Source: Lepidodermella squamata (lineage: Eukaryota; Animalia; Gastrotricha). Taken from it: 64,000 bases of DNA. Within the stretch, counting starts at the first letter, position 1. Each line of letters starts with the position of its first letter. Positions 14,301 through 38,749 of the stretch are shown in pieces. The notes under the pieces are model-generated. The model made no database searches. It saw nothing but the letters and a program-made list of their open reading frames with translations, and was not told the origin of the DNA. A program made the position numbers and the translations under genes. The DNA lies in contig JBLDXI010000031.1 in NCBI GenBank assembly GCA_047495785.1, positions 310,001 through 374,000 of the forward strand, given 5' to 3'.

Positions 14301-17300
14301 CCGAGAAAACCGGTGACAAATATCTGGGGACAACACAATGGGGACCGAGCATTCTGGGGACAAACTGTGGAATTAGTGACCCGCCAAACAGGTGACATAA
14401 TCTGGGGACAACACAGTGGAGACCGAGCATTCTTGGGACAAACGGTGGAATCAGTGACCCATGAAACAGGTGACAATTATCTGGGGACAACACAGTGGGG
14501 ACCGAGCATTCTGGGAACAAGTTTTCTGTCACCAAAGTCTCGTCCCCAGATTTTTGTCCCTAGTTTTTTGTCCCCAGATTGTTGTCCCCAGAGTGTTCGG
14601 TCCTCATTCCCGAGGTGTTCGTCCGCAGAATGTTGAATTAGCAGTTTTCTGTCACCAAAGTCTCGTCCCCAGATTCTCGTCCCCAGTTTGGTGTCCCCAG
14701 ATTGTTCGCTCCACATTCCCCAGGTGTTCGTCCGCAGAATGTTGTATGAGTAGTTTTCTGTCACCAAAGTCTCGTCCCCAGATTCTCGTCCCCAGATTTT
14801 TGTCCGCGGTTTGTTGACCCCAGATTGTTCGGTGTTAAATCCCCAGGTGAAATTTGAAAGCTGTTTGGGCTGTTTTAATGGCCACCTCGGCCTAGCTGTG
14901 ATCGAATCTCCACGATGACGGTTGATAGATCGTTATTCGCTCATGCCGTTATTTCTGGGTCTACTGATTTCCGACTGGGAACCGAGAAAACCGGTGACAA
15001 ATATCTGGGGACAACACAATGGGGACCGAGCATTCTGGGGACAAACTGTGGAATTAGTGACCCGCCAAACAGGTGACATAATCTGGGGACAACACAGTGG
15101 AGACCGAGCATTCTTGGGACAAACGGTGGAATCAGTGACCCATGAAACAGGTGACAATTATCTGGGGACAACACAGTGGGGACCGAGCATTCTGGGAACA
15201 AGTTTTCTGTCACCAAAGTCTCGTCCCCAGATTTTTGTCCCCAGTTTGTTGTCCCCAGATTGTTGTCCCCAGAGTGTTCGGTCCTCATTCCCGAGGTGTT
15301 CGTCCCCAGAATGTTGAATTAGCAGTTTTCTGTCACCAAAGTCTCGTCCCCAGATTCTCGTCCCCAGTTTGGTGTCCCCAGATTGTTCGCTCCACATTCC
15401 CCAGGTGTTCGTCCGCAGAATGTTGTATGAGCAGTTTTCTGTCACCAAAGTCTCGTCCCCAGATTCTCGTCCCCAGATTTTTGTCCGCGGTTTGTTGACC
15501 CCAGATTGTTCGGTGTTAAATCCCTAGGTGAAATTTGAAAGCTGTTTGGGCTGTTTTAATGGCCACCTCGGCCTAGCTGTGATCGAATCTCCACGATGAC
15601 GGTTGATAGATCGTTATTCGCTCATGCCGTTATTTCTGGGTCTACTGATTTCCGACTGGGAACCGAGAAAACGGGTGACAAAAGAAAACTGGGGACAACA
15701 CAATGGGGACCGAGCATTCTGGGGACAAAACTCTGGGGACAACACAATGGGGACCGAGCATTCTGGGGACAAACTGTGGAATTAATGACCCACCAAACAG
15801 GTGACATAATCTGGGGACAATACAGTGGAGACCGAGAAAACGGGTGACAAAAATCTGGGGACAACACATTGGGGCCCGAGCATTCTGGGGACAAACTCTG
15901 GGGACAACACATTGGGGACCGAGCATTCTTGGGACAAACGGTGGAATCAGTGACCCATCAAACAGGTGACAATTATCTGGGGACAACACAGTGAAGACCG
16001 AGAAAACGGGTTACAAAAATCTGGGGTAAACACAGTGGGGCCCGAGAAAACCGGTGACAAATATCTGGGGACAACACAATGGGGACCGAGCATTCTGGGG
16101 ACAAACTGTGGAATTAGTGACCCGCCAAACAGGTGACATAATCTGGGGACAACACACTGGAGACCGAGAAAACGGGTGACAAAAATCTGGGGACAACACA
16201 GTGGGGCCCGAGCATTCTGGGGACAAACTGTGGAATTAGTGACCCACCAAACAGGTGACATAATCTGGGGACAACACATTGGGGCCCGAGCATTCTGGGG
16301 ACAAACTCTGGGGACAACACATTGGGGACCGAGCATTCTTGGGACAAACGGTGGAATCAGTGACCCATCAAACAGGTGACAATTATCTGGGGACAACACA
16401 GTGGTGACCGAGAAAACGGGTGAGAAAAATCTGGGGACAACACATTGGGGCCCGAGCATTCTTGGGACAAACGGTGGAATCAGTGACCCATGAAACAGGT
16501 GACAATTATCTGGGGACAACACAGTGGGGACCGAGAAAACGGGTGACAAAAATCTGGGGACAACACATTGGGGCCCGAGCATTCTTGGGACAAACGGTGG
16601 AATCAGTGACCCATCAAACAGGTGACAATTATCTGGGGACAACACAGTGGGGACCGAGAAAACGGGTGACAAAAATCTGGGGACAACGCATTGGGGCCCG
16701 AGCATTCTTGGGACAAACGGTGGAATCAGTGACCCATCAAACATGTGACAATTATCTGGGGACAACACAGTGGGGACCGAGCATTCTGGGAACAAGTTTT
16801 CTGTCACAAAAGTCTCGTCCCCAGATTCTCGTCCCCGGATTTTTGTCCGCGGTTTGTTGACCCCAGATTGTTCGGTGTTAAATCCCCAGGTGAAATTTGA
16901 AAGCTGTTTGGGCTGTTTTAATGGCCACCTCGGCCTAGCTGTGATCGAATCTCCACGATGACGGTTGATAGATCGTTATTCGCTCATGCCGTTATTTCTG
17001 GGTCTACAGATTTCCGACTGGGAACCGAGAAAACCGGTGACAAATATCTGGGGACAACACAATGGGGACCGAGCATTCTCGGGACAAACTGTGGAATTAG
17101 TGACCTACCAAACAGGTGACATAATCTGGGGACAACACAGTGAAGACCGAGAAAACGGGTTACAAAAATCTGGGGTAAACACAGTGGGGCCCGAGAAAAC
17201 CGGTGACAAATATCTGGGGACAACACAATGGGGACCGAGCATTCTGGGGACAAACTGTGGAATTAGTGACCCATCAAACAGGTGACATAATCTGGGGACA

Positions 17301-20300
17301 ATACAGTGGAGACCGAGAAAACGGGTGACAAAAATCTGGGGACAACACATTGGGGCCCGAGCATTCTGGGGACAAAACTCTGGGGACAACACATTGGGGA
17401 CCGAGCATTCTTGGGACAAACGGTGGAATCAGTGACCCATCAAACATGTGACAATTATCTGGGGACAACACAGTGGGGACCGAGAAAACGGGTGACAATT
17501 ATCTGGGGACAACACAGTGGGGACCGAGCATTCTGGGAACAAGTTTTCTGTCACCAAAGTCTCGTCCCCAGATTTTTGTCCCCAGTTTTTTGTCCCCAGA
17601 TTGTTGTCCCCAGAGTGTTCGGTCCTCATTCCCGAGGTGTTCGTCCCCAGAATGTTGAATTAGCAGTTTTCTGTCACCAAAGTCTCGTCCCCAGATTCTC
17701 GTCCCCAGTTTGGTGTCCCCAGATTGTTCGCTCCACATTCCCCAGGTGTTCGTCCGCAGAATGTTGTATGAGCAGTTTTCTGTCACCAAAGTCTCGTCCC
17801 CAGATTCTCGTCCCCAGATTTTTGTCCGCGGTTTGTTGACCCCAGATTGTTCGGTGTTAAATCCCCAGGTGAAATTTGAAAGCTGTTTGGGCTGTTTTAA
17901 TGGCCACCTCGGCCTAGCTGTGATCGAATCTCCACGATGACGGTTGATAGATCGTTATTCGCTCATGCCGTTATTTCTGGGTCTACTGATTTCCGACTGG
18001 GAACCGAGAAAACCGGTGACAAATATCTGGGGACAACACAATGGGGACCGAGCATTCTGGGGACAAACTGTGGAATTAGTGACCCGCCAAACAGGTGACA
18101 TAATCTGGGGACAACACAGTGGAGACCGAGCATTCTTGGGACAAACGGTGGAATCAGTGACCCATGAAACAGGTGACAATTATCTGGGGACAACACAGTG
18201 GGGACCGAGCATTCTGGGAACAAGTTTTCTGTCACCAAAGTCTCGTCCCCAGATTTTTGTCCCCAGTTTTTTGTCCCCAGATTGTTGTCCCCAGAGTGTT
18301 CGGTCCTCATTCCCCAGGTGTTCGTCCGCAGAATGTTGTATGAGCAGTTTTCTGTCACCAAAGTCTCGTCCCCAGATTCTCGTCCCCAGATTTTTGTCCG
18401 CGGTTTGTTGACCCCAGATTGTTCGGTGTTAAATCCCCAGGTGAAATTTGAAAGCTGTTTGGGCTGTTTTAATGGCCACCTCGGCCTAGCTGTGATCGAA
18501 TCTCCACGATGACGGTTGATAGATCGTTATTCGCTCATGCCGTTATTTCTGGGTCTACTGATTTCCGACTGGGAACCGAGAAAACCGGTGACAAATATCT
18601 GGGGACAACACAATGGGGACCGAGCATTCTGGGGACAAACTGTGGAATTAGTGACCCGCCAAACAGGTGACATAATCTGGGGACAACACAGTGGAGACCG
18701 AGCATTTTTGGGACAAACGGTGGAATCAGTGACCCATGAAACAGGTGACAATTATCTGGGGACAACACAGTGGGGACCGAGCATTCTGGGAACAAGTTTT
18801 CTGTCACCAAAGTCTCGTCCCCAGATTTTTGTCCCCAGTTTTTTGTCCCCAGATTGTTGTCCCCAGATTGTTCGCTCCACATTCCCCAGGTGTTCGTCCG
18901 CAGAATGTTGTATGAGCAGTTTTCTGTCACCAAAGTCTCGTCCCCAGATTCTCGTCCCCAGATTTTTGTCCGCGGTTTGTTGACCCCAGATTGTTCGGTG
19001 TTAAATCCCTAGGTGAAATTTGAAAGCTGTTTGGGCTGTTTTAATGGCCACCTCGGCCTAGCTGTGATCGAATCTCCACGATGACGGTTGATAGATCGTT
19101 ATTCGCTCATGCCGTTATTTCTGGGTCTACTGATTTCCGACTGGGAACCGAGAAAACGGGTGACAAAAGAAAACTGGGGACAACACAATGGGGACCGAGC
19201 ATTCTGGGGACAAAACTCTGGGGACAACACAATGGGGACCGAGCATTCTGGGGACAAACTGTGGAATTAATGACCCACCAAACAGGTGACATAATCTGGG
19301 GACAATACAGTGGAGACCGAGAAAACGGGTGACAAAAATCTGGGGACAACACATTGGGGCCCGAGCATTCTGGGGACAAACTCTGGGGACAACACATTGG
19401 GGACCGAGCATTCTTGGGACAAACGGTGGAATCAGTGACCCATCAAACAGGTGACAATTATCTGGGGACAACACAGTGAAGACCGAGAAAACGGGTTACA
19501 AAAATCTGGGGTAAACACAGTGGGGCCCGAGAAAACCGGTGACAAATATCTGGGGACAACACAATGGGGACCGAGCATTCTGGGGACAAACTGTGGAATT
19601 AGTGACCCGCCAAACAGGTGACATAATCTGGGGACAACACACTGGAGACCGAGAAAACGGGTGACAAAAATCTGGGGACAACACAGTGGGGCCCGAGCAT
19701 TCTGGGGACAAACTGTGGAATTAGTGACCCACCAAACAGGTGACATAATCTGGGGACAACACATTGGGGCCCGAGCATTCTGGGGACAAACTCTGGGGAC
19801 AACACATTGGGGACCGAGCATTCTTGGGACAAACGGTGGAATCAGTGACCCATCAAACAGGTGACAATTATCTGGGGACAACACAGTGGTGACCGAGAAA
19901 ACGGGTGAGAAAAATCTGGGGACAACACATTGGGGCCCGAGCATTCTTGGGACAAACGGTGGAATCAGTGACCCATGAAACAGGTGACAATTATCTGGGG
20001 ACAACACAGTGGGGACCGAGAAAACGGGTGACAAAAATCTGGGGACAACACATTGGGGCCCGAGCATTCTTGGGACAAACGGTGGAATCAGTGACCCATC
20101 AAACAGGTGACAATTATCTGGGGACAACACAGTGGGGACCGAGAAAACGGGTGACAAAAATCTGGGGACAACGCATTGGGGCCCGAGCATTCTTGGGACA
20201 AACGGTGGAATCAGTGACCCATCAAACATGTGACAATTATCTGGGGACAACACAGTGGGGACCGAGCATTCTGGGAACAAGTTTTCTGTCACAAAAGTCT

Positions 20301-23300
20301 CGTCCCCAGATTCTCGTCCCCGGATTTTTGTCCGCGGTTTGTTGACCCCAGATTGTTCGGTGTTAAATCCCCAGGTGAAATTTGAAAGCTGTTTGGGCTG
20401 TTTTAATGGCCACCTCGGCCTAGCTGTGATCGAATCTCCACGATGACGGTTGATAGATCGTTATTCGCTCATGCCGTTATTTCTGGGTCTACTGATTTCC
20501 GACTGGGAACCGAGAAAACCGGTGACAAATATCTGGGGACAACACAATGGGGACCGAGCATTCTCGGGACAAACTGTGGAATTAGTGACCTACCAAACAG
20601 GTGACATAATCTGGGGACAACACAGTGAAGACCGAGAAAACGGGTTACAAAAATCTGGGGTAAACACAGTGGGGCCCGAGAAAACCGGTGACAAATATCT
20701 GGGGACAACACAATGGGGACCGAGCATTCTGGGGACAAACTGTGGAATTAGTGACCCATCAAACAGGTGACATAATCTGGGGACAACACAGTGGAGACCG
20801 AGAAAACGGGTGACAAAAATCAGGGGACAACACATTGGGGCCCGAGCATTCTGGGGACAAACTCTGGGGACAACACATTCCGAGCATTCTTGGGACAAAC
20901 GGTGGAATCAGTGACCCATCAAACAGGTGACAATTATCTGGGGACAGCACAGTGGTGACCGAGAAAACGGGTGAGAAAAATCTGGGGACAACACAATGGG
21001 GACCGAGCATTCTGGGAACAAGTTTTCTGTCACCAAAGTCTCGTCCCCAGATTTTTGTCCCCAGTTTTTTGTCCCCAGATTGTTGTCCCCAGAGTGTTCG
21101 GTCCTCATTCCCGAGGTGTTCGTCCCCAGAATGTTGAATTAGCAGTTTTCTGTCACCAAAGTCTCGTCCCCAGATTCTCGTCCCCAGTTTGGTGTCCCCA
21201 GATTGTTCGCTCCACATTCCCCAGGTGTTCGTCCGCAGAATGTTGTATGAGTAGTTTTCTGTCACCAAAGTCTCGTCCCCAGATTCTCGTCCCCAGATTT
21301 TTGTCCGCGGTTTGTTGACCCCAGATTGTTCGGTGTTAAATCCCCAGGTGAAATTTGAAAGCTGTTTGGGCTGTTTTAATGGCCACCTCGGCCTAGCTGT
21401 GATCGAATCTCCACGATGACGGTTGAAAGATCGTTATTCGCTCATGCCGTTATTTCTGGGTCTACTGATTTCCGACTGGGAACCGAGAAAACCGGTGACA
21501 AATATCTGGGGACAACACAATGGGGACCGAGCATTCTGGGAACAAGTTTTCTGTCACCAAAGTCTCGTCCCCAGATTCTCGTCCCCAGTTTGTTGTCCCC
21601 AGATTGTTCAATCCTTATTCCCTAGGTGTTCCTCCGCAGAATGTTGTACGAGCAGTTTTCTGTCACCAAAGTCTCGTCCCCAGATTCTCGTCCCCAGATT
21701 TTTGTCCGCGGTTTGTTGACCCCAGATTGTTCGGTCCTAAATCCCCAGGTGAAATTTGAAAGCTGTTTGGGCTGTTTTAATGGCCATCTCGGCCTAGCTG
21801 TGATCGAATCTCCACGATGACGGTTGAAAGATCGTTATTCGCTCATGCCGTTATTTCTGGGTCTACTGATTTCCGACTGGGAACCGAGAAAACCGGTGAC
21901 AAATATCTGGGGACAACACAATGGGGACCGAGCATTCTGGGGACAAAACTCTGGGGACAACACATTGGGGACCGAGCATTCTTGGGACAAACGGTGGAAT
22001 CAGTGACCCATCAAACATGTGACAATTATCTGGGGACAACACAGTGGGGACCGAGAAAACGGGTGACAAAAATCTGGGGACAACACAGTGGTGACCGAGA
22101 AAAAGGGTGACAAAAATCTGGGGACAACGCATTGGGGCCCGAGCATTCTTGGGACAAACGGTGGAATCAGTGACCCATCAAACATGTGACAATTATCTGG
22201 GGACAACACAGTGGGGACCGAGCATTCTGGGAACAAGTTTTCTGTCACCAAAGTCTCGTCCCCAGATTCTCGTCCCCAGATTTTTGTCCCCGGTTTGTTG
22301 ACCCCAGATTGTTCGGTCCTAAATCCCCAGGTGAAATTTGAAAGCTGTTTTGGCTGTTTTAATGGCCACCTCGGCCTAGCTGTAATCGAATCTCCACGAT
22401 GACGGTTGATAGATCGTTATTCGCTCATGCCGTTATTTCTGGGTCTACTGATTTCCGACTGGGAACCGAGAAAACCGGTGACAAATATCTGGGGACAACC
22501 CAATGGGGACCGAGCATTCTGGGGACAAACTGTGGAATTAGTGACCCACCAAACAGGTGACATAATCTGGGGACAATACAGTGGAGACCGAGAAAACGGG
22601 TGACAAAAATCTGGGGACAACACATTGGGGCCCGAGCATTCTGGGGACAAAACTCTGGGGACAACACATTGGGGACCGAGCATTCTTGGGACAAACGGTG
22701 GAATCAGTGACCCATCAAACATGTGACAATTATCTGGGGACAACACAGTGGGGACCGAGAAAACGGGTGACAATTATCTGGGGACAACACAGTGGGGACC
22801 GAGCATTCTGGGAACAAGTTTTCTGTCACCAAAGTCTCGTCCCCAGATTTTTGTCCCCAGTTTTTTGTCCCCAGATTGTTGTCCCCAGAGTGTTCGGTCC
22901 TCATTCCCGAGGTGTTCGTCCCCAGAATGTTGAATTAGCAGTTTTCTGTCACCAAAGTCTCGTCCCCAGATTCTCGTCCCCAGTTTGGTGTCCCCAGATT
23001 GTTCGCTCCACATTCCCCAGGTGTTCGTCCGCAGAATGTTGTATGAGCAGTTTTCTGTCACCAAAGTCTCGTCCCCAGATTCTCGTCCCCAGATTTTTGT
23101 CCGCGGTTTGTTGACCCCAGATTGTTCGGTGTTAAATCCCCAGGTGAAATTTGAAAGCTGTTTGGGCTGTTTTAATGGCCACCTCGGCCTAGCTGTGATC
23201 GAATCTCCACGATGACGGTTGATAGATCGTTATTCGCTCATGCCGTTATTTCTGGGTCTACTGATTTCCGACTGGGAACCGAGAAAACCGGTGACAAATA

Positions 23301-25065
23301 TCTGGGGACAACACAATGGGGACCGAGCATTCTGGGGACAAACTGTGGAATTAGTGACCCGCCAAACAGGTGACATAATCTGGGGACAACACAGTGGAGA
23401 CCGAGCATTCTTGGGACAAACGGTGGAATCAGTGACCCATGAAACAGGTGACAATTATCTGGGGACAACACAGTGGGGACCGAGCATTCTGGGAACAAGT
23501 TTTCTGTCACCAAAGTCTCGTCCCCAGATTTTTGTCCCCAGTTTTTTGTCCCCAGATTGTTGTCCCCAGAGTGTTCGGTCCTCATTCCCGAGGTGTTCGT
23601 CCCCAGAATGTTGAATTAGCAGTTTTCTGTCACCAAAGTCTCGTCCCCAGATTCTCGTCCCCAGTTTGGTGTCCCCAGATTGTTCGCTCCACATTCCCCA
23701 GGTGTTCGTCCGCAGAATGTTGTATGAGCAGTTTTCTGTCACCAAAGTCTCGTCCCCAGATTCTCGTCCCCAGATTTTTGTCCGCGGTTTGTTGACCCCA
23801 GATTGTTCGGTGTTAAATCCCCAGGTGAAATTTGAAAGCTGTTTGGGCTGTTTTAATGGCCACCTCGGCCTAGCTGTGATCGAATCTCCACGATGACGGT
23901 TGATAGATCGTTATTCGCTCATGCCGTTATTTCTGGGTCTACTGATTTCCGACTGGGAACCGAGAAAACCGGTGACAAATATCTGGGGACAACACAATGG
24001 GGACCGAGCATTCTGGGGACAAACTGTGGAATTAGTGACCCGCCAAACAGGTGACATAATCTGGGGACAACACAGTGGAGACCGAGCATTCTTGGGACAA
24101 ACGGTGGAATCAGTGACCCATGAAACAGGTGACAATTATCTGGAGACAACACAGTGGGGACCGAGCATTCTGGGAACAAGTTTTCTGTCACCAAAGTCTC
24201 GTCCCCAGATTTTTGTCCCCAGTTTTTTGTCCCCAGATTGTTGTCCCCAGAGTGTTCGGTCCTCATTCCCGAGGTGTTCGTCCCCAGAATGTTGAATTAG
24301 CAGTTTTCTGTCACCAAAGTCTCGTCCCCAGATTCTCGTCCCCAGTTTGGTGTCCCCAGATTGTTCGCTCCACATTCCCCAGGTGTTCGTCCGCAGAATG
24401 TTGTATGAGCAGTTTTCTGTCACCAAAGTCTCGTCCCCAGATTCTCGTCCCCAGATTTTTGTCCGCGGTTTGTTGACCCCAGATTGTTCGGTGTTAAATC
24501 CCCAGGTGAAATTTGAAAGCTGTTTGGGCTGTTTTAATGGCCACCTCGGCCTAGCTGTGATCGAATCTCCACGATGACGGTTGATAGATCGTTATTCGCT
24601 CATGCCGTTATTTCTGGGTCTACTGATTTCCGACTGGGAACCGAGAAAACCGGTGACAAATATCTGGGGACAACACAATGGGGACCGAGCATTCTGGGGA
24701 CAAGTTTTCTGTCACCAAAGCCTCGTCCCCAGATTCTCGTCCCCAGTTTGTTGTCCCCAGATTGTTCAATCCTTATTCCCTAGGTGTTCCTCCGCAGAAT
24801 GTTGTATGAGCAGTTTTCTGTCACCAAAGTCTCGTCCCCAGATTCTCGTCCCCGGATTTTTGTCCGCGGTTTGTTGACCCCAGATTGTTCGGTCCTAAAT
24901 CCCCAGGTGAAATTTGAAAGCTGTTTGGGCTGTTTTAATGGCCATCTCGGCCTAGCTGTGATCGAATCTCCACGATGACGGTTGAAAGATCGTTATTCGC
25001 TCATGCCGTTATTTCTGGGTCTACTGATTTCCGACTGGGAACCGAGAAAACCGGTGACAAATATC
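8319..25065. repeat. Complex satellite array, basic unit 681 bp, 23 cores, with variant and higher-order units
   Basis: Identical ORF-track peptides recur every 681 bp (8827, 9508, 10189 ... 13594). Each unit has a TGTCCCCAG-repeat arm, a ~130-bp unique core and a TGGGGACA-repeat arm. Variant units of 401-1362 bp occur after ~13.6 kb. Confidence 0.97.
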
Positions 25066-25080
25066 ACACTATATTTCGGT

Positions 25081-25098
25081 AGCGCCAATTTGCGCCAC
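25081..25098 (+). repeat. Left subterminal 18-bp direct repeat (partner at 53178-53195)
   Basis: AGCGCCAATTTGCGCCAC versus AGCGCCATTTTGCGCCAC, 17/18 identical. Confidence 0.8.
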
Positions 25099-25459
25099 TG
25101 CGCGCCAGTTACAGCCACCCGCGGCGCCGCGTACTTGAGTGTGTGCAAACAAGGCAAACACCGCATATTCTCGCCGTGGGATAACGCCCGCACTCGGGCG
25201 GTTTAAAGTTAAGCCTTGAACTATTCCAAAATTCAATGAACGGTGTTGACTTAAAGCGCATACTTCGACACGCTATCGATTTCCGAGTATTGAAATGAGA
25301 AATGGATAAAATAACACGTCTTTCCGGGGTGTCTTTGTTAAAACACTGATGAAACCATCGATGCGGTGAGTACCAGCAGTATATTAACCCCAAAATTCCA
25401 GAATTTCAGCATTAATAGTCAATTCTGCATCATTTTCAAACCCAATTTCGAACAAAGCT

Positions 25460-26404
25460 ATGCTATCAGCTGTAACAGTGGTTGTAGCCATTTCTTCGTG
25501 CATTTCAATTTTGCACGCGGAGCCACCTCAACTGGCTCCTGGTGTTGGCGCTTCAATCGGTCGCCAGTGGTATCATCAGCTGGCGTCAAACAATTCAACA
25601 GCCATGGTCGAATTCGTAAATTCATTGCCGACGCTCTGTTCATCAAACGACGCCGCGGAAGATTTGCCTGTTCGAATGATGGCCGCCTACTACGACGCCA
25701 ATAAGTTGGCGCAACCCGACTGCACCGAGCCGACGTTCGATTCCTGCATGGTTTCCATTGGCGGCGATACCCTCAAGCGATGGCTGGAGTTTCGCTATCA
25801 AGCGCCGTATGTGTGCCAATTTATTTCTTACCAAAATCAATCTTTAATAGACCAACTTGACTCGCTCCTTGTAAATTCCCGGTATTATGAGCAAATTAAG
25901 GTGGCGATTGAGAATTTTTTTATTCGTTGCGCCATATCTCAAATTTTCTGGTTGCCCAAGATGGAAAATGAGTTTAATATTGCCCGTGGGTTAGTTTACG
26001 TTTTCCTTATTACAATCGGTCTTCTATTTGCTTGCATCTGCTCGAAAGTATTGATAGTTTTCGCATTGCAAATGACATTAGGGGAAATTCTTATTTCAAT
26101 TTCGTTCCTACTAACTGATGACATCGTCAATGATAACATCTCGCCGCATCTGATCTGCCTTATTTTTCGTTACGCCCTTACTGTGCGCTTTCTTTTCTAC
26201 AACTGTCCCAAAAACTCGGAAATAGGAAAGCTTTTAATGCTAGTGAAATGCTGCGCGAAACAAATTGTTGTGAATTCGCGAAAGCGAAAGGCGGCTACTT
26301 TCGATGAAGAAGCTCTCGTACCCGCATTAGACAGTCCGCCGAAAAATCCGCCTCGCAGAACAACTCGTAGTTCTAATGCTTCAAATCGTAATAACGCTGC
26401 TTGA
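25460..26404 (+). CDS. Signal peptide, Cys-containing lumenal domain and ~3 TM segments; GEX1/KAR5/Brambleberry-like (tentative)
   Basis: Intact 314-aa ORF. N-terminal hydrophobic leader; LC...PDCTEPTFDSCMVSIGGDTLKRWLEFRYQAPYVC matches by eye the Cys-rich domain pattern of that family; three hydrophobic segments; basic C-terminal tail. Confidence 0.6.
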   Translation: MLSAVTVVVAISSCISILHAEPPQLAPGVGASIGRQWYHQLASNNSTAMVEFVNSLPTLCSSNDAAEDLPVRMMAAYYDANKLAQPDCTEPTFDSCMVSIGGDTLKRWLEFRYQAPYVCQFISYQNQSLIDQLDSLLVNSRYYEQIKVAIENFFIRCAISQIFWLPKMENEFNIARGLVYVFLITIGLLFACICSKVLIVFALQMTLGEILISISFLLTDDIVNDNISPHLICLIFRYALTVRFLFYNCPKNSEIGKLLMLVKCCAKQIVVNSRKRKAATFDEEALVPALDSPPKNPPRRTTRSSNASNRNNAA

Positions 26405-26703
26405 AACTGTTCTCTCGTCTATTTTGAACTAACAATGTCTTTTTTGAGAAACTAGCCCACTTCTGTAATTTTTCGAGTCTCAATCTCTTGTACAGTTCGG
26501 TTAAAGTTTTGCCGCCGCTTTTTTCAATTATTCGCGAAGGTTACTTATTACTATTGTTATGAAAAATGACAGTCTTGTTTTTCGGCTGAACTAACAATTT
26601 TGATTTTGTGAGCTTGGGAACTTTTACTTTCAACGTAAATTGTTGCTTTTACGTGGACGTTTTTTATGATGTATAAAAAATAAAATCACGAGATTTCGGC
26701 TCC

Positions 26704-28004
26704 ATGGTTGAAGAAAACTTGGAAACCGACAAGCTTTCAATAATTAATTTTTGTGTTTTTTTGTTATTTAGAGCTTTGTTTTACATTGAAATTCTGCATC
26801 GCATGGCGGTTTTTCTGTCGCAAGCCGCGCTCGACAACCACGTTCGCGCAGAGATCTCGCGCCAGATCCCGGCCAGCTTCGCCGATTCTATGCTCGCGGC
26901 GACTTTGGTACCGCCGATCATCACCGCTCCGTTTATCGCCCCTTCAGGGTGCTTGCAGTCTCGGTCGGAAATTTGCCTTTTCCCGACAGTCCCGTTCTGG
27001 GCACAACAACAAGCAGCTGCCTATCAAATGCAAATGCAGTTTCAGCAAGCCTCCTCGAGCTTTTTGCCACCTTTTTCACCCTCTCCGAAGCCTAAAGAGA
27101 CCGGGCGCCGCGAAAAAATCTGCCGCTTTTGTAACACCAAGCGAAGCAGCAACCACTTTCAACGGCACGTTCGGAATTGCAAAGCGGCGAAAGCCAGGAA
27201 TGTCTCGATGGAGGAGCGCGAAATTGCCGCCACTATGGGCATCACGGCGGAAGCCCGCGACCGCGATGCCCTGCTAGAAAAGGTGTCATCCAAGGTCGCC
27301 AGTGTCGTGTCTAGAGGCCTCTCACGCGAGATACGGCCAATCAAGTGTCCGAATTCTGTTTCGAAACTTCCCGTCATCGTCGAGCGAACAGCTACATCGA
27401 CTACGTCGGGCCAGCTTAAGCAATGCAGCGAACATTTCAAGACGCTAATTGAGCTGTATCACGGTGGTAGTCGCTACAGATGGCTGCCCAAGAAGAAATC
27501 GAATACCAGGAAAGCAAAGAAAACTCGTCTCGCGTCGATTTTCACTCTATCAAGGACCTACAACCTCGAACAACTGGAGAGTTTCGACCACTGGGATCGA
27601 TTTTTCGAGTCGGGTGGCGCCATCTTACGTTTGAATCAGCCGAAAGTTGTCAAAAAATCGAAGGGCAAAAGCAAGCCGGCTACAGTCGGTCGCCGTGCCC
27701 AGTACTCTCGGATCAAAGAGCTAGGCGACTTTGTTTCCTGGCTTGCGGCGAATGGTCACATCGTCGAATCTCCGAAGCTGAAATCATTGCTCTTGGATAC
27801 AACGTCGCAGCTTCTCCAAGGCTCAAAACGAGAAAGCGGCCTCAAGAAAACCGAAAGAGCGAAGTTTGCCCATGACATGGAGCTACCGATGAAATTTTAC
27901 CAGCACATCGACGAGCTGATCGCTGAACGCCGAAAGGGGCTGAACCTTTACGGGCTCAAAATCGCTCGAATTGCAGTTGCGGCCAATTCTCATACCGGTT
28001 GCCG
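26704..28004 (+). CDS. Tyrosine recombinase exon 1 (C2HC zinc finger, ends inside the catalytic Arg codon)
   Basis: Zinc finger CRFC-x12-H-x3-C. The ORF ends NSHTGC-CG followed by the consensus donor GTGAGT at 28005. Alternative start Met at 26803. Confidence 0.8.
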
Positions 28005-30162
28005 GTGAGTAACAGCTTCGTCTTAATTTTTCAAACATAGCGCAGCCGGTTTTTCCTTTGGATTAACGATGAATCATGATTGAGTCATCAGAGCGTCATT
28101 TGGCTGTAGTGAAAGAATCGAAGTTTTCTCCGCGATTCTTCGCGATTCTTCAATTTCAAGGTGTTTTAAGGCGATTTGGAGCCTGTTACTACCTGCTGCA
28201 TCCGGAAACGGTTTCCTCAATAGCACCCGGTTCAAAAAAATTACGCCACTGATAAATCAGCAATATCATTTTATTTCGGCCGGCCATCGCGGCCATCGCC
28301 GTGAAAATAAGAAGGCAATTGGAGAAAAATAATCAGATTCACAACAATTATGCGCAATAAAATATTGACAGGAATGATCATAATTCAAATTTTCGCAGCC
28401 GGGACGATTTTGAAACCGCATACTTCCTACAAGATATCAATACTCAGTAAGCTTTGAGGCATTCATCAGCTGACAATAACCAGGTTTCCTAAGTGAAAAG
28501 TGAAAGTTACCTCAAAGTTGGGCATAGGTATTGACGCCAAAATTGAAGCAGGGAAAGAGCAATAAATAGGCATTAGAGGCACTGATAAAAAATCCGATTG
28601 AATTTAAAGCCGCAATATTTAATGGAAAATTAATACAATTACTCGAGGAATTTTCAGGCAGAATGAAAGCCGATTGAAAACAATTGATAGTGATAGAGAA
28701 TGTTCACGGCCAGCGGGGATTCTTCGCAGATCATAATAATATAAACAAGAATTTATTATTTGCAAGAATTCTTTGAAACTTTAAACGAAAATTTACAAAA
28801 TTGGTCGAGTCAGAAAGATGTAAGATTTTTCCATTTTTTTTTTTAATTTATTGTAACGCGGGAAAAATTATAGCCATGGTTGGGAATCTGGAGGCATGAT
28901 TTTCGCTAAAATCTGAGAGATTCGAACTCCATTTTTGAGGAACGAGAAAAAGATTAATTAATAGCGCAGTTTCCTACACTAACGTTTAAAAAATAATGAA
29001 AAATTCTACATTTTTTTCTGCACAATGAGACATCAGTACAGTCGTGTAGGACAAGGTGTCACGGCAGCATGAAATAGGAGCACGCACAAATTCATACATA
29101 ATTTACGTTATAGTCACGCGCGAGTAGTTTAATTTAGGTAAATTTAAAAACCACCTACTCACACGTTATAGCTGAAATTTTTTTCGAACATTTCTGGTAA
29201 AAGCTGTTATCAGAAGTAATTTAAACGAAGAGATAATAACATCGCAGTCGGTTTGAAAAAAAAGATGGCATATTAAATGCGACCATAACTACTGCAGTTT
29301 TGCGCGCAAAGTTCGAATTCACTAGAGCGTGTCGCATTGAATTCAGACCTGTACAAGGTGGCTAAAAAGTGCGTAATTTTTGCCGTCGCTAATCAGACGT
29401 ATTACAGTCAGTGTGAGCAACTTTTCACAAGTTCTGTAGATCTTGAAAATCAGACATCCTGGTGCCGAGTTTGAGCCCAATTCAGTTATGACATCGATTT
29501 GCGCTTTTACCGCCGATACTCGGGGTTCACGTTACAAGTGAGGCTCCAGCAAGAGAATTCTCAACAATTTTTGCCTGGGATTGCGGGGTAGGTAATTATA
29601 ACGCCACGTGCGGTAAGCTAACGAGAAAATACTAGGGCCTACAGAGCCGATACGGACGGATTTATGCATTATTTGATAGAAAATCATTTTTCAGAAATTT
29701 CAGTAATCGATTGCAGATTGCAGCATCGTCATATTTTCTACATAAATGTATAAATCAGACGGTACCTGGTACCCAAAAATGAGGAGAGGTTATAATGTCC
29801 ATACAAGTTGCTTATCAATATTGTAACGCATAAAATGTTGATAAAACGACGCGAAAACGTGTAGCAGCGCCAAGGCTTGAATTCAGTACTGGAGCCTCAA
29901 ATTGCTGAGAGCTGGGTTCCAATTTTTTATTAATAAAAGCCGTATAACCGCAGCTCTCAGTGCATGTTCTGTGGCGTGTTCAATAAGGGTTAAAATTATG
30001 GTATCAATTGGCCTAATAAGCCGAATTCAACTAAAAGAAGATATCATCACATATTATCGAATGAGAAAGTATCATCTGAGTATGTGGCCGAAAGGAAATT
30101 CAGCACTGGCTTGAAATTATTGCTCGATTTTCGATCGCACACACCGGATCGTCAATCAGATG

Positions 30163-30430
30163 TTCCATAGCTGGGCGTTGGTTCGGTAGCATGCAGGAAT
30201 GACAGCTGAAATAAAATCAGATATTAAAAAAAATAGAAAACGCAAGAAATTTTAAAATTTAAAATTGAATTATTTGAAATTTTGAAATTTTAATAAAATT
30301 CCATAGCTTGGCGTTGGTTCGATGGCATGCAGAAACGAGCTGAAATGAAATCAGATATAAGAAAAATGGGGAACGCGAGAAATTTTAAAATTTAAAATTT
30401 TAATATTTGAAATTTTGAAATTTTAATTTA
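30163..30430. repeat. Two-copy diverged tandem repeat, ~135 bp
   Basis: TTCCATAGCT(G/T)GGCGTTGGTTCG...GAAATTTTGAAATTTTAAT occurs twice. Confidence 0.75.
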
Positions 30431-30748
30431 AAAAATGGATGATTAGAAATATTTAAATTTTGAATGACATCGAGGATCAAGGCAATAGACAAATTCAGGA
30501 AATTTCTTAAAAAAAGAGGTGGAAAATCTGATAAATTACCGAGCTTTCTGTAGACTATATCGATATCGAAAGCCAGTAAGCTGCACGCACTCATCGGTCA
30601 AAGCATCACCAATCGATCGGCTGCTTTCCAATCTAAACAAAAATAAGAATATCATAGATGTTGCAATTTTTCATTCATAATGGCGCCGTTACAGTAAAGC
30701 TGGGAGCAGGGGGAATACCAGGTTAAAAATTTGGCAGTTGCGCAGTAG

Positions 30749-30877
30749 GGGTCTATTTCATCTGCTCGCGGAATATTTGTTTTTCATTGTGAAATTCCAT
30801 TTTTCTGATTTAAAATGAAATTAAAAGAAATTTCACAATGAAAGAGTCAATTTTCCGCGAACCGGTGAAATAGACCC
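30749..30877. mobile_element. Small foldback MITE (PIF/Harbinger-like)
   Basis: TIR GGGTCTATTTCA / TGAAATAGACCC, largely palindromic body, TAG on both sides. Confidence 0.55.
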
Positions 30878-33800
30878 TAGGAGTTGCATAGGGCCTATTA
30901 ATTTTCAGATTTATTCACGAAGGAAAACAATAAAATTCTTCATAATCAATAAATTACAAAATGAAATTTGAGGCTGAAATCCTTATTATGGTTTGCTATG
31001 AAACCGATAGCCTGACTTGATTTCAGCGTCCAATCAATTCTTAGGAATTTGATCTGTTGGTAGGGGATTAAGAGGGATCAAATTGAGAAATTTACCTTGG
31101 GAAAACAGCTTAGGTCAGCTTTGATTCCTGATTAGCATTGCCGTAACACAACTGGACTAACGGTGTGGTTAAACGGCCGCAAACTTGAAACTTGGCCGGC
31201 GAATCGACAGCCATGCATCAAAAAGTGCCGCGATGAAAAAGCGAAAAATACAATTCTAAAATTAAAAAAATAATGAACTGAAGGATGAACGGCATGCGGC
31301 ATAAGCCAGTAAGACAATTGCGACGCTTGGATTGTTACGTGAAAATAAGTGCGCAACAACTCCAAGTTCGCGCACAATGAAGAACACGCACGAAAAAATT
31401 GAGAAATAAAAATTGAGAAAAAAATCCCCTGATAACAAATAAATTTAATAAAAAATCGGAAAATACCCAGTCCGGCCTAATAGTTCCTGGCGTAAACGCT
31501 TGAAGGTTGAACATTATGCATGCAATTAAACTTTGGATCGAATTTAAATGAAAATTTTCAGTGAAAAGGAATTGGAAATTCGAAGAGCTGCTAATGCCTA
31601 TATTTGTGGAAAATAATGCCCAGAATATGTGTATCGCGAAGGCTGACAGAACTGAACGGTTTGATTTTACCATAGCGTTGGTGATAGTTAAGAGCCAGGT
31701 AATACAAAGAGTTACCACAAACCCACAAGCGAAAGAAATAAAAAATTTCTAAATTTCTAAAATTAGGCTCGAATTAAACCGATTTTTCAGACAATTCCAC
31801 TTTTCGCTCAAAAAATTCGGCTTTCGGCAAGCTCGCGTTTTGGATTGACAGTTTTCCAGCAGTTAAATTACCATAAAATTGTCATGATTCGCAGCTATTG
31901 GTTTGTATTGAGGTAAAATTATCAGACTACATTTTTAGAAATTTTACAACACTTTCTGATTTTCTGAATTTTGGCAAGTTATCACGCCAAGAAAATGCCA
32001 TCATTTCAAGATGAAATATTATTTCAATGAAAACAATGACCCGTCAAGCAAGGCGAGTCATTTAACACCAGAAGTTGAACGCAAAAGGGGCCGCAGCGAT
32101 GAAAGAGCAACGCGATGATAATGATGGCTTTTCCGCGCGTTGAGGTCATGCGGCTGTTTCTATAATTGAACGTAATAAAATAAAGCGGCAGACACTGACG
32201 AAGTGTTTCAGCCTAAAAGCAAAGAAACTTCCTCTAGTACCTGCTAGGGACTGGGGATAAATATTGATAATTTGATTTGGCAGAATTATTTGCTCGTACT
32301 GCGACGAGTTAATCCTTCTGACCATTGTTGCGCAATCGGATTATTTACAAACCTTCGATTTCGTTATTGCGGGTTCGAATTTTTCGCTTTTGTATGCTTA
32401 CAATTTTTCTTGAGTAATTAACTGCTTTTGGCTAATTTTCGATTATTCTACCGCAGCGACCTTGAAATCGTCGCTGAAGCAATGAATTTAGCTTGATGGG
32501 CGGCGGTTTTCTTATAATTTAACGTTACTTCTATTTGCCTCTTATGAACACTAAAATTGGAGTGCAAGTTTCATAAAATCGAAAACTTTTTCATTGGTAG
32601 CACATAGAATTTTGAATATTTGAATATAATATTTGAATAGTTTCGTGACGTTATCAGTTACCTATTTTACATGCTTACCGCTACGAATTCCTGCAACTAT
32701 CGGACGCGAAGTGGAATAACTAAGTAAGTTTCATGTCTTCATTGGAATAGGCTGCTGTCTACAGAAAATAAGAATTTTTTAAATTATTACTTTCCTTCGC
32801 GCCAGAAATCTCAAATTTGATAATGAGACGTATTTTTACTTTGCCAAGCCGTCTACTAGTAAGAATGACAAAAAAATTATCAACAAAATGTCTGTTTTTA
32901 AAGGAGATTTCAAAGTAGAAAAAGTCTTGAAATTGGCGGTTTTTTCAAGAAAAAAACAGGACAGCGTGAATGAGCATCATCAATAGTAGTAGTTAGTGAA
33001 GTTTATTCAAGAATTCCGAAACTTAGCCAAAAAATTCCAAAAGGTGGGTCGAAACCTCGAAATTAGAATTTTTAGTGTAGTGCAAAAAAGTCGCTATGAG
33101 CCCGCTAATCCCTCAGAGTGAATCACGCTAGTACTAAACATGCGAGAAGCTGGAGGGGGTTCGGAGGGGGTTCGGTTTTACAATGAAAAAATACTCCTCC
33201 GCCAGTAATGTTACGTAATGTGCTTCACTCACAATGAAAATCGAGACTCATTTTTTCGACTGGATTTTTTGCATGACAACCTAACATTGTGCTCGGATTA
33301 TCACCATTTTTTTCGAAAAAACACACCGTTTAAATTTTCCAATTGCGGTTAATAGAAAAATGAAACGGAAAAGGAAAAAGCCATAAAATCTAGACAATAA
33401 ATAGGTGAATCCCGAATCTCGTCTATACGTCGCTCGTCGTCAAAAATTGAAAGCAATTTTATCAGCATTTTTTACGCGAATTTTTATTTTTTATCGGCTA
33501 TGTGGAATTACTGTGGGCTGTGGGGTCGATGTGACAAAATGAAAAAAATGTGAAGGAAGACACGCTCCGTTTCACGTATTTCTACAATTTTCTATTTTAA
33601 ATTATTTAGCATGCCGTTATTATCAAGCCGAGCCGGTACCAAATTCCAAGACCGAACTTTCGAAAAGGAAAAACCTAGAACATCAGTCGAGCGTGCTACG
33701 AAAAATGTCGTTTAGTCGTTGGTCGTTTAGTGGCATCGGACTCGACAGTGATGTACCAATTATTACCAGTACGATGACGGCCTAATTCATAGCAACGCGG

Positions 33801-34977
33801 TTGAATCAAGCGAATTCGCCGAAACCATTCAACCGTGAAAATTTCGTATAAATCGAATACTGTTTTGGCAATCGTCCTTTTCGATTGCCCGGCGAGGCTT
33901 TGTAGCCCTCTAGCTTCGTTCAGCCAAATCCTTATCATGACACAACGATGACCCGAAAAGCATCGGTATCTACTTCGTCAATTTCTCTCTAAACCTATTT
34001 TCCCGCAATTTTACCGCGAACGAAGCGCGGTCAATGAGGTTGCATCGAATTCATCCAGCCGTTGCTACGCAGCTGGTGAGGTTCTTGTTGTTCTCGTCTC
34101 TTGCCTTCTTGGGGAAGCATTGAGCTGGAAGCTTCAAGTTTCGTTGGATCCAATTTGGTACTCGTGATCTGATTGAAAGGTCAGCTATTTCTTTCTATTA
34201 TTTCTCCGACTGATTATTCATCAAATATTTGTAAAACGGGCCTTAAATCAACGACTTGTGTCTTGTGTTGAATTTTTTAGCAAATGTTCTCTGAAATTTG
34301 TAGCTGTCGTCATATTTGCCCCGGACATCTCCCACGCTTGAGCTCCGCTAAATTTATTGATTATTTAAAAAAATTATAATTTAAAAAATATTATTTTTTC
34401 TTTGTTATCCATTTTCAGCCTCTATTATAATTTTTTATAACGACTAATTTTATGCCCCTCGTCAGCTTCGATCACCTTGGTTTAAATTTTCCAGAATTTT
34501 TCGCTATATCTCCACCCACATTTCTCGGCGACCTCAGGCGTGAATTAGAGCCCTCGAGCCTTTTCTCCCGGATTATTCCGAATTTTTCTAAATTCATAAA
34601 CTGTTTTTGAAAAATTCCCGGAATGAAGAAAAATGCTAGAGGTTCTATCGTGATTTTCAGGGGGAAAATAAATACAACAGCTTGAAAACAACAGTTGATT
34701 ATCTTCTGATGAAATTAAGCTGGATCGTTTTCTAGCGGGTCCAATTATTCCGAAAATAATTCCAAATATTTCCAAAAAATAATATATTCAGTTTCTTGTA
34801 TTTTAACTCAGGCTACCGTAGCCGCTGATACCCGATACAATTTGAAATGAATGGAATCGGAGTCGAAACTAAAACGATCGCAAATCGGGGACTCTAGTTA
34901 ATTCGAACAATGCTCGGATTGTCGGCTAAAAATTACCAGAAAATATTCTGCGACTCGATTTCTAAAACCGGCGTGCT

Positions 34978-35534
34978 GAGGTGCGTTTTTTATTAAAACC
35001 GAGGTGCTATTGTTCAGCGCTGTGATCAATTTTTCGGTGAGATTCGCAACAGAAAAATCACAATCGGCACGTCTATCATGAACTGACCGGCTCGAATTGC
35101 GGTCAAGGCCGGTCAGAAAAGACAAATCCCCGCGCGGATTAAGAACATTTGGCCGCGGCTAAATCTTGACATGGCTGTAATTAATTTACGGCCATGCAAC
35201 ATGTGACCCTCGTTAATTTCTGACCCCATGTCTTAAGAGCTAATTTTATCCAAACTACGCAGAAAGGGTTTTTATTTTCTCTGCAATTATCGAACATGAA
35301 ATCGATTTTAAAAAAAATCGATCAATTTGGTAAAATTTATGAAAATCCAAAGCGTTTTAGGCGATTTCTGACCATTATTTTGAATCCAAGGGTGCCGACA
35401 AGTTCGAATTTCTTAATTTTAAATTTTTGAGTTTTTGATGGGGTTTGAGAAGCTCTAACTTTTCGTGTGTCATCTGGTGTTAATTGATGTAATTAGTCTT
35501 CAGCACACCACGGTTTTAATAAAAAACGCACCTC
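34978..35534. mobile_element. MITE with GAG...CTC termini (Sola-like, tentative)
   Basis: 24-bp perfect TIR GAGGTGCGTTTTTTATTAAAACCG. Flanks TGCT / TGCG. Absent from the paralogous block near 48330-48375. Confidence 0.65.
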
Positions 35535-35825
35535 TGCGAGCGAGCTCGTCGGAATGACTCAACCGTGACGGTATTTACAATTTACAAGTCATTGTGCCTT
35601 CAGTCGTCATTGAGAAGTCGCAGGCGGGCAACAACTTCAGCCTGGACGAGACAAATTTCCTGTTCAATCAGTCTTGTTAAAGGTAAGAATGTAGCTATAA
35701 TTTTATCGTATGGATTTTCATCGAGAAATTTAATGTTTTACAAGTTCGAAAAATATCCCACTCCTCTCTATTACTTTCTACTCTAGTATTTTCTCTATCC
35801 AAATTATTTATAAATTATTTTGAAA

Positions 35826-36457
35826 GATACTTTAATCCGCAGCAATTTTTTTCTTTTCGCAGCAAATTTGTTCTTTCCGCAGCAATTTTTTTTTCTCGCA
35901 GTATCACTTTCTTTTCGCAGCAAATCAACGTTTTTTCCGCAGTAAATGCTAATTGAATAACTAATTGAAATAACATAGCCACCGAACTATATTAAGGCTA
36001 TTCAATATTTAAAATGTATACCCGTACATGTACATGTATCCCGTGAAGAAATGCCTCAAAAACCTTTAAGAAATAGCCCCACAATGTTTCTCGTTGGGCA
36101 AATCTTAATGCGGTATGAAATTTCATTTAACTCAATACCTAACCAGGTTAGTCGGTTATTCAACTGGTTAGGGTTAGGTTAGGGTTAGATGCTGGGTCTT
36201 AAAATCGGGGACTTTGAACGGATTGGTATATTTTGGTATGAGGATATTTCAAGACTCTAAGCCGTCCTAGATTTTCATTTTCGTTTACTATTATTTATAT
36301 TCCCCGTTCTTTTCCTATTTTAGCTAATAAAAATAAATTGCTGCGGAAAAAACGTTGATTTGCTGCGAAAATAAAGCGATACTGCGAGAAAAATAAATTG
36401 CTGCGGAAAGAACAAATTTGCTGCGAAAAGAAAAAAATTGCTGCGGAAAGAAGTACC
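35826..36457. mobile_element. Foldback element with ~115-bp inverted arms made of ~20-bp subrepeats
   Basis: (TT)CGCAGCAA-type repeats at ~35836-35942 are mirrored at ~36335-36450. Absent from the paralogous block near 48610-48650. Confidence 0.7.
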
Positions 36458-36852
36458 GTCCATTATTTTTTATGAATATCTGGCCGTAATCAATTAAGGT
36501 GAATTCAGCTTGGTGTAGATTATTTCGATTTTTTTCTTTTTTCTCCATGATTTGGTGATGATTCGCGACAACTCAGCTGCTAAGATGCATCTTACGTTGT
36601 GACACTTCTTGATTCGCAGGTGATCATGATCGAAATTTTATCTAGCTTTCAACTTTTAACGAGCCTCGCTGTGATTTTTGCATATTTTTAGCTCATTTTA
36701 GTTGACAATTGATATCGTGAAAAACAGGGCAGCCAAACCTTTCTATTCCTCCTTTTAACGTCTTATGTTATGCCTTTCCTCAGCTTCAATCACCTGGGTT
36801 ATAAAATTCGTTTTTTCACCATACTCACCCACATATTTTAGGCGGATTTACT

Positions 36853-37505
36853 TGTCATCGGATTAAACACTCAACACCAATACGTTTCAAAAGGTTTATT
36901 CATATTTTCAATACCAGCTACCGGTTTCAAGCCACCAACGCTCGAACATCAGAAATGAGTTACGACGCACCTCCGTACGCAACAATAATTCGTAACTACG
37001 CATCAGCAATCTCGAAATACGCAATAGGAAATCGATCAGCAATCGATTCAAAGATAATGCGCAATCAATACGCAATAGGAATAATGACTCATCTCCATGA
37101 TGCAATCGATACGTCATAATAATTATGACTCATCATAGCTTCGACTTAATAAATATGAATCATCTATAGAAAGTACTATGATGGATCTTGGCAATATTCC
37201 AATGACGCAGTAGCATGAGCCTATATAAACTCCATGTTTCTCATTCTGTATCAACTAACTAACAAGCTTAACTAGCAGACCACTAGAACTAGCAAAGCTA
37301 ACGGCTCACGAGCTTTGATTAGTTTATGACACTAGAGTTACGTGTGCTACTAACTGTCGACGAAGTCATCCGAAGACTTCTGCCCTGTGTCACCGAACAA
37401 GTGTCGCAATAAAATATCAAATACCAGAATTAATTCTCTATCTGTTATTCGAGTTGATCAAGCTACTGGTTTGATATAACTCTGTTCTAATAGATAGGTG
37501 TGACA
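36853..37505 (+). repeat. 5' LTR
   Basis: TG...CA ends, internal TATATAAA and AATAAA; repeated at +9369. Confidence 0.95.
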
Positions 37506-37510
37506 TATTC

Positions 37511-37523
37511 TGGTGGCAGCGGT
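37511..37523 (+). other. Primer binding site, probably tRNA-Leu
   Basis: TGGTGGCAGCGGT just after the 5' LTR, complementary to the ...ACCGCTGCCACCA 3' end typical of tRNA-Leu. Confidence 0.75.
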
Positions 37524-37697
37524 TAGCGAAACCACCCCAATCACAGAACAATTACGGCGCAACACGCTAGAATTGACATTTATCGCCCAAATCGGAAGAA
37601 GAACCTCAGGTTCAAAAAGGCAACTCAACGAGTCAAACAAGCATTGATTCTTTACTACAATATTCGCTACAAACAAGTAACCAGCACATGGTAATCG

Positions 37698-38684: not shown

Positions 38685-38736
38685 GAAGGGCCGGTGTAGC
38701 AAACGGGGGAACGCCGTCCCAAAAGCCAAACCCCGC
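38675..38736 (+). promoter_or_regulatory. -1 ribosomal frameshift signal (slippery heptamer plus predicted H-type pseudoknot)
   Basis: G GGA AAC immediately precedes the gag stop; pol is in the -1 frame and open from here. Stem GGGCCGGTGT / ACGCCGTCCC, and loop CGGGG can pair with downstream CCCCG. Confidence 0.8.
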
Positions 38737-38749
38737 ATTAATAGCTCAA

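Follow-up and report, generated by a model that had tools for sequence, protein, structure and literature searches.

The stretch of DNA analysed here (the window) comprises 64,000 nucleotides of the gastrotrich Lepidodermella squamata (NCBI GenBank assembly GCA_047495785.1, contig JBLDXI010000031.1, positions 310,001 to 374,000 of the forward strand) and carries a Crypton-like transposable element inserted in a satellite array. Three genes belong to this element: a gene for a predicted three-pass membrane protein, a tyrosine-recombinase-like gene and a gene for a small single-pass membrane protein. The first of them, which is the subject of the present study, is an intact, intronless open reading frame (ORF) at 25460..26404, with ATG as its start codon, TGA as its stop codon and a product of 314 amino acids (aa). 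The recombinase-like gene consists of two exons and is interrupted once (26803..51854, with its start at 26704 or 26803), and the small gene is located at 52472..52973. All features lie on the forward strand unless stated otherwise. The whole element, as it stands, occupies 25066..53198, with ~5 kb of its own sequence and ~23 kb of foreign DNA inside it.

Both junctions of the element were aligned with intact satellite monomers (alignment A9). The insertion target, an array of a 681-bp satellite, forms the left flank (8306..25065), and the same satellite family forms the right flank in the same orientation (53205..56407), being more diverged there and ending in an inverted stretch. Satellite identity ends at 25065 and restarts at 53205, which is the very next monomer position; elsewhere in the window, the uninterrupted 27-bp target word is present 33 times exactly and 75 times with no more than two mismatches. 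The element is bordered by the 6-bp direct repeat AATATC on the left (25060..25065) and on the right (53199..53204), representing either a target duplication or a crossover core. A subterminal 18-bp motif, a candidate recombinase-binding site, was detected by pattern search in the same orientation at the left (25081..25098) and right (53178..53195) ends; it is confined to these two ends and a duplicate of the right end, with a chance expectation of 0.15. The GC content of the element's own parts was 0.47–0.48 against a background of 0.37–0.38. Neither terminal inverted repeats nor long terminal repeats (LTRs) were found at the element's termini, and no reverse transcriptase, gag or methyltransferase was found in its own ~5 kb, the reverse transcriptase of the window belonging to a nested LTR element. 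Location of the three genes in a discrete insertion with defined junctions has been demonstrated by these alignments, and the pattern is Crypton-like because the insertion into the satellite monomer is precise, the direct repeats are 6 bp long, and terminal inverted repeats and long repeats are absent. Precise insertion into one satellite word suggests a site-specific safe-haven strategy.

The ~23-kb block inside the recombinase-like gene has a background-like GC content (0.37–0.38) and holds a young Ty3/gypsy element; terminal inverted repeats of this block were looked for, and none were found. The idea that the split of the recombinase gene marks an integration site within its intron was also considered, and it was rejected because a single satellite monomer, cut into two halves, accounts for both outer junctions.

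Homologues of the 314-aa protein were readily recovered. A word-indexed search returned two of them (E = 2e-74 and 1e-57, 44–48% identity), and an exhaustive HMMER search, in which a three-sequence profile was run against 1.84 billion representative proteins with any length allowed, reached a profile score of 1e-119 and yielded seven proteins: four close relatives, whole or fragmentary, two more distant ones (P0006, E = 8e-6; P0007, E = 5e-5) and one spurious match, P0008, which was rejected as a kringle-repeat serine protease. Further members came from cluster and contig look-ups, and all relatives stem from unannotated metagenome or read-archive assemblies. The remote clades are ~23% identical to the window protein. 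Within clades, the proportion of non-synonymous differences (pN) was 0.27–0.37 per site against a synonymous proportion (pS) of 0.78–0.88, at which synonymous sites are saturated. The gene is intact in the window and at loci L003, L006/L007, L002, L005 and L009, and the L001 copy has one in-frame stop. Because the homologue and profile scores are strong and pN is well under pS, the ORF at 25460..26404 is a real gene under constraint, far beyond what chance would give. Pfam, PHROGs and PDB sequence searches with the membrane protein returned nothing meaningful, and a scan of JGI metagenomes with the membrane-protein alignment revealed no relatives.

The protein begins with a hydrophobic leader, a predicted signal peptide of approximately residues 1–20 (25460..25519) with a putative cleavage site at its end, whose Kyte-Doolittle peak lies at residues 10–13 and which has equivalents in P0003, P0016 and the L009 product. 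Residues 21–165 (25520..25954) are predicted to form a luminal, all-helical Cys-rich domain with a conserved juxtamembrane helix; the Cys-containing region is ~145 residues long, and the domain carries four family-conserved cysteines and one more, together with a conserved N-x-S sequon column in the family alignment on the luminal side. Three predicted transmembrane helices follow within residues 166–248 (25955..26203). The AlphaFold model (m44a6f277825f), built on seven family sequences, had a mean predicted local distance difference test score (pLDDT) of 64.6, with 78–87 over residues 30–125, and showed an all-helical ectodomain, membrane helices at 166–193, 196–218 and 229–248, and a disordered tail from residue 267. 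Hydropathy confirmed the leader and the first two membrane helices, the third being weaker. Helix 2 is followed by an acidic loop and helix 3 by the basic tail, an arrangement that appears to fit the positive-inside rule.

The arrangement of the element's genes was compared between loci. In the window and at L001, L003 and L006/L007, the membrane gene, the recombinase-like gene and the small transmembrane gene follow each other in the same order and on the same strand, and at L001, L003, L006 and L007 only 94–127 bp separate the membrane gene from the next gene, which has ~570 codons in two exons. The element has no genes beyond these three at L001, L003 and L006 or in the ~5 kb of its own sequence in the window. 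In the remote clades (L008/L005 and L009), the membrane gene is likewise followed by a homologue of the recombinase-like gene, namely P0017 in L008 and P0046 in L009, the latter being one ORF of 593 aa. Enough flanking DNA is available for six independent lineages, and the membrane gene is paired with the recombinase-like gene in every one of them. Since this pairing holds even at ~23% identity, the membrane gene is a conserved, long-standing core partner of the recombinase-like gene and no recently captured cargo. An earlier reading made from the letters of the window (the sequence-only reading) had proposed an intronless copy captured as cargo by a mobile element; the intronless gene and the mobile element are both there, as the insertion junctions show, and the capture has to be given up in favour of a core gene kept across clades. 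The same linkage bears on the proposal that the ORF arose by chance or belongs to the host and merely lies beside repeats, outside any mobile element. Its single copy in the window and the lack of names and of annotated source genomes among its family members would agree with such an origin, but its place inside an insertion with defined junctions, its linkage to the recombinase-like gene in six of six lineages and its strong conservation reduce the probability of this proposal almost to nothing.

Loci L005 and L008 were also considered as two separate insertion sites, and this was rejected in favour of one locus with an indel: a palindromic indel of ~35 bp upstream of the membrane gene (L008:70-110) distinguishes the two, which are otherwise 99.5% identical. 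Flanking ORFs of the trio at L006 and L007 encode a FLYWCH zinc finger and an RNaseH-like transposase of the MULE/ZSWIM type (L006:2-781 and 5493-6254; L007:312-1118), neither of which has a counterpart in the window; a Lin-15B-like neighbour is present at these loci as well.

The second gene of the element, searched exon by exon, is homologous to its counterparts in L001, L003, L006/7, L008 and L009 and encodes a probable tyrosine recombinase. The start of the second-exon product matched the NCBIfam archaeal XerA model (E = 0.0021) and the Pfam Phage_integrase model (E = 0.034) over the same residues, both scores falling short of the curated thresholds. In the family alignment, the candidate residues follow each other with the usual order and spacing: an Arg resembling that of box I, the Lys of a Gly-Met-Lys-Asn hairpin, Thr-Gln-Arg at the H-x-x-R position, then Gln (His in P0046) and, about ten residues on, Tyr. 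The first exon contains a C2HC zinc-finger-like motif. A phase-2 intron of 54–57 bp lies within an Arg codon in L001, L003 and L006/L007, and the same codon is split in the window; the intron is absent from the remote clade. The introns of these genes end in T-rich tracts followed by AG (TTTTCAG in the window). Such short introns, the operon-like gene spacing of ~100 bp and the FLYWCH, Lin-15B-like and MULE neighbours at L006/L007 would suit a nematode-like host. No match to the DUF3504 model was obtained with the recombinase-like gene, and scanning JGI metagenomes with the alignment of second-exon products gave no relatives. The protein homology search with the second-exon product also gave no match, with known relatives likewise unrecovered by it.

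The small membrane-protein gene (52472..52973) contains one change of reading frame in the window, which is due either to a frameshift or to a short intron that escaped recognition. Its relatives P0039 and a 152-aa ORF of L001 (L001:3511-3969) are intact, and P0042 also belongs to the family. Common to these proteins are a two-Cys motif conserved in the N-terminal part, a stretch rich in Thr and a polybasic juxtamembrane run, and their C-terminus reads NPRRSTRI, resembling a motif of the unrelated 314-aa protein. A mobile element that retains two membrane proteins, unrelated but with one terminal motif in common, might carry in them a selfish pair of the toxin-antidote type, competing for one cellular site through the common tail motif and thereby promoting inheritance of the element; in nematode toxin-antidote elements, novel membrane proteins act as toxins. 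However, the remote clade L008/L009 has the large protein and the recombinase gene and no clear homologue of the small gene within the available DNA, and we regard such a pair as very improbable.

The tail of the 314-aa family carries two conserved islands in an otherwise variable linker: an R/K-K-R-K cluster and a terminal Pro-Arg-Arg-Ser-x-Arg-Leu-Ser. In the window these correspond to an RKRK cluster resembling a nuclear localisation signal (NLS) at 26279..26290 and to an HMGN/Dsup-like motif at 26351..26374, which reads PRRTTRSS in the window copy and PRRS[ASTK]RLS in relatives. The tail of P0003 has seven of the eight HMGN core residues (core wording RRSARLSA), that of P0001 agrees with the Dsup segment in seven of nine residues, the variant RRS[TK]RLS is found in P0002 and P0004, and the last residues of the L009 member are Arg-Arg-Ser-Gln-Arg. 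When each tail was shuffled 10,000 times, the full motif appeared in no more than seven shuffles. The HMGN/Dsup motif has been defined, and the Dsup segment has been located on the H2A-H2B acidic patch by cryo-electron microscopy; Dsup is so far the sole non-vertebrate protein shown to use an HMGN-type motif (PMC12487698).

The best explanation of these data, which we hold with somewhat more confidence than doubt, is that the 314-aa protein is a glycoprotein of the endoplasmic reticulum (ER) or nuclear-envelope type, encoded by a core gene of a ~5-kb Crypton-like transposon and docking on chromatin. According to this model, a circular form of the element would be integrated by the recombinase into a satellite monomer, as proposed because the element sits between two 6-bp copies in one monomer. 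The 314-aa protein would be inserted in the membrane by its signal peptide, its small disulfide-bonded helical domain would stay in the lumen, and the disordered basic tail of ~65 residues would be exposed on the cytoplasmic or nucleoplasmic side; this orientation is proposed because the N-terminus with its leader, cysteines and sequon column would be luminal, three membrane helices follow, and the charges agree with the positive-inside rule. Through the NLS-like cluster the protein would reach the inner nuclear membrane, where the tail motif would dock on the nucleosome acidic patch, a course suggested by the presence of both the cluster and the HMGN/Dsup-type motif in the tail. The small membrane protein, having the same motif, would also dock, either assisting or competing with the 314-aa protein. 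In yeast Heh1 and Heh2, an NLS on a disordered linker is the route to the inner nuclear membrane. Demonstrated are the gene, its conservation, the order of the genes, the junctions of the insertion and the motifs in the tail, whereas the topology, the nuclear-envelope location, the nucleosome binding and the benefit to the element are all putative; a nuclear-envelope role is our best functional guess, and it stands on new, independent grounds, the tail motifs.

Several observations weigh against this explanation. The window tail keeps only R-R-x-x-R (Arg-Arg-Thr-Thr-Arg), a degenerate form with Thr-Thr and no Leu; in P0016 no more than Lys-Lys-Thr-Thr-Arg is present, and the short tail of P0006 lacks the motif. 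An Arg-rich tail motif of this kind could instead be a kinase site, a 14-3-3 site or an Arg-based ER retrieval signal. The third membrane helix is weakly hydrophobic, and the tail would be luminal if this helix did not span the membrane. As for the recombinase, the probable assignment is based on sub-threshold model matches and a reading of motifs, the usual first His of the R-H-R-Y tetrad is Thr, Ser or Asn in all members, the other family members gave no match to recombinase models, and the structure prediction of the second-exon product reached a pLDDT of 33. The only copy in the window has, moreover, an interrupted recombinase-like gene.

The trafficking signals just mentioned would fit another role, in which both membrane proteins act at the cell surface or in the secretory pathway, as an envelope-like or adhesion pair that could help to bring the element into other cells or hosts, or by altering host membranes, with the Arg-rich motif serving as an ER-retrieval, kinase or 14-3-3 signal. 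The signal peptide, the sequons, the disulfide-rich ectodomain and the mucin-like Thr-rich ectodomain of the small protein would suit such a function, and membrane-fusion or env-like genes are carried by some nematode transposons and LTR elements. Yet viral glycoproteins and fusogens showed no likeness in fold or profile, the ectodomain is of very small size, the 5-kb element has no capsid or packaging genes, and terminal wording of the HMGN/Dsup type after an NLS-like cluster suits chromatin better than trafficking signals, so that a surface role appears improbable.

A further explanation, which builds on a likeness noticed in the sequence-only reading, is that the 314-aa protein is a divergent, shortened member of the GEX1/KAR5/Brambleberry (Bmb) family, which would act in nuclear-membrane fusion (pronuclear or karyomere) to the element's advantage. 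The Cys-rich domain of this family is said to have been defined by Ning et al. 2013. The architecture described in that reading (signal peptide, Cys domain, helical stretch, three transmembrane segments and basic tail) was borne out by the model, the hydropathy and the translation, and the residue pattern quoted there, beginning C...PxCTE, is indeed present in the translated ORF. This architecture is common to the 314-aa protein and the published family, the traits of which are a signal peptide, an N-terminal Cys-rich domain, a helical region and two to three C-terminal transmembrane segments (PMC4291462, PMC7586128), GEX1 having three such segments (PMC4291462; PMC7586128; PMC10609895). A signal peptide and C-terminal transmembrane segments in this number were found in the 314-aa protein. 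Further defining features of the family are six cysteines shared by all orthologues, between one and three coiled coils, a nuclear-membrane location and the Pfam Tht1 domain (PMC4291462; PMC7586128; PMC10609895). Six luminal cysteines are present in P0006, P0016 and the L009 product, with spacings of 12-23-12-6-22, 12-24-12-6-22 and 12-19-12-17-25, respectively, which can be compared with the conserved cysteines of Kar5 (C56, C68, C91, C105, C116 and C141; spacing 12-23-14-11-25) (PMC4291462), a comparison made post hoc. Little besides its cysteines is kept in the GEX1/KAR5/Bmb family, and the tail motifs of the 314-aa protein independently hint at a nuclear-membrane location.

The profile and fold searches did not bear this explanation out. 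None of the ten members compared with Pfam Tht1 (PF04163), that is, the window protein, P0001–P0004, P0006, P0007, P0012, P0016 and the L009 product, matched it at E ≤ 10. The seven matches of the exhaustive profile search all belonged to the element family, apart from the spurious protease, and PDB was empty of relatives by sequence and by fold: when the full model was compared with PDB and BFVD in Foldseek, nothing significant emerged, only membrane-protein noise at E > 0.3. The luminal region of ~145 residues compares with several hundred in GEX1/KAR5/Bmb proteins and has no long coiled coil; between the Cys-rich domain and the first transmembrane segment there are ~40 helical residues in short helices instead of one to three coiled coils. 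Of the six cysteines described in the literature as conserved in every orthologue, two are missing from the clade of the window protein. These are the first and the third, both replaced by Ala in the window, as the sequence-only reading had noticed, and their joint loss is suggestive of the loss of one disulfide. Of that reading as a whole, the mobile element and the likeness in architecture stood, and the capture and the match to the family by profile or structure did not. Membership in the GEX1/KAR5/Bmb family is, in our estimate, unlikely.

A bolder combination of these ideas can be formulated, in which a family of Crypton-like transposons, probably at home in nematodes, encodes its own inner-nuclear-membrane proteins, one of them a miniaturised GEX1/KAR5/Brambleberry descendant, both of which would clamp the membrane to nucleosomes through the HMGN/Dsup-type motif and would influence the assembly or fusion of the nuclear envelope of the germline or early embryo in favour of transmission. 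We consider this combination, as a whole, to be a long shot.

The remainder of the window contains several features outside the gene set of the element. The satellite has 109-bp subrepeats; its left array is 96–100% homogeneous, and its right array is 82–93% similar, with the inverted stretch at 56009-56407. The nested Ty3/gypsy LTR retrotransposon (36853..46882) has LTRs of 661 bp that are 99.7% identical and encodes gag, and pol as two same-frame ORFs (one in-frame stop); three further ORFs follow pol, and a membrane helix in one of them (42908-43420) raises the possibility of an env-like product. It is surrounded by ~13 kb of DNA of background composition (28005-36852 and 46883-51166; GC 0.37–0.38). 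A 100%-identical repeat of 49233-55844 is present at 57389..64000 and includes a second copy of the element's 3′ part and of the right junction; the repeated unit of 8156 bp (49233-57388), identical throughout to the window end, stems either from tandem duplication in the very recent past or from misassembly. Debris of other retroelements is found at 4000-8300, where fragments of an integrase core (6168-6563) and of a reverse transcriptase (7282-7626) lie on the reverse strand; the same region has a Cys/Thr-rich, secreted-looking ORF on the forward strand (4164-4508). An Rfam scan of the window revealed no RNA genes.

Among eukaryotic DNA transposons, Cryptons are the class about which least is understood, and their coding capacity is generally taken to go little beyond the recombinase. 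The retention of two membrane proteins by deeply divergent lineages would be evidence that even a simple DNA transposon may possess its own cell-biological module, one probably aimed at the nuclear envelope and chromatin, because both proteins end in the HMGN/Dsup motif. The range of the HMGN-type motif would thereby grow to include membrane proteins and a further animal group. Were the GEX1/KAR5 link true, this would be the first case of sexual-cycle fusion machinery on a mobile element.

Among known systems, the element resembles the Cryptons, which were reportedly described by Goodwin 2003 as DNA transposons with a tyrosine recombinase only. Like them, it has no reverse transcriptase, terminal inverted repeats or long terminal repeats, has a 6-bp terminal direct repeat, and carries a recombinase-like gene with an N-terminal zinc-finger or DNA-binding part. 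Some Cryptons carry one extra gene; the present element differs in having two conserved membrane-protein genes, in a recombinase too divergent for Pfam with the tetrad His replaced, and in its insertion into a specific satellite word. In Cryptons, which lack terminal inverted and long repeats, terminal direct repeats of 4–6 bp serve as recombination substrates and a circular intermediate has been proposed (Kojima and Jurka 2011, PMC3212892).

Compared with the GEX1/KAR5/Brambleberry proteins, the 314-aa protein is half their size or less and is encoded by a transposon, whereas they are products of a single-copy gene of the sexual cycle; a nuclear-membrane location, as in that family, is likely on the evidence of its tail. 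With HMGN and tardigrade Dsup, the element proteins share the terminal Arg-Arg-Ser-x-Arg-Leu-Ser, the arginine anchors of which lie in the H2A-H2B acidic patch in those proteins (PMC12487698). In the element, this motif stands at the C-terminus of integral membrane proteins with no other likeness to HMGN or Dsup, and its binding is predicted. Finally, the model of the 314-aa protein has a membrane anchor with a disordered, putatively nucleoplasmic extension bearing an NLS-like cluster and a candidate chromatin-binding element, the same plan as in LBR, the LEM-domain proteins and yeast Heh1/Heh2. These proteins are chromatin tethers of the inner nuclear membrane. The 314-aa protein has no LEM, Tudor or sterol-reductase domain, and its luminal Cys-rich domain is unmatched among them; its contact with chromatin would be made instead by a short acidic-patch motif.

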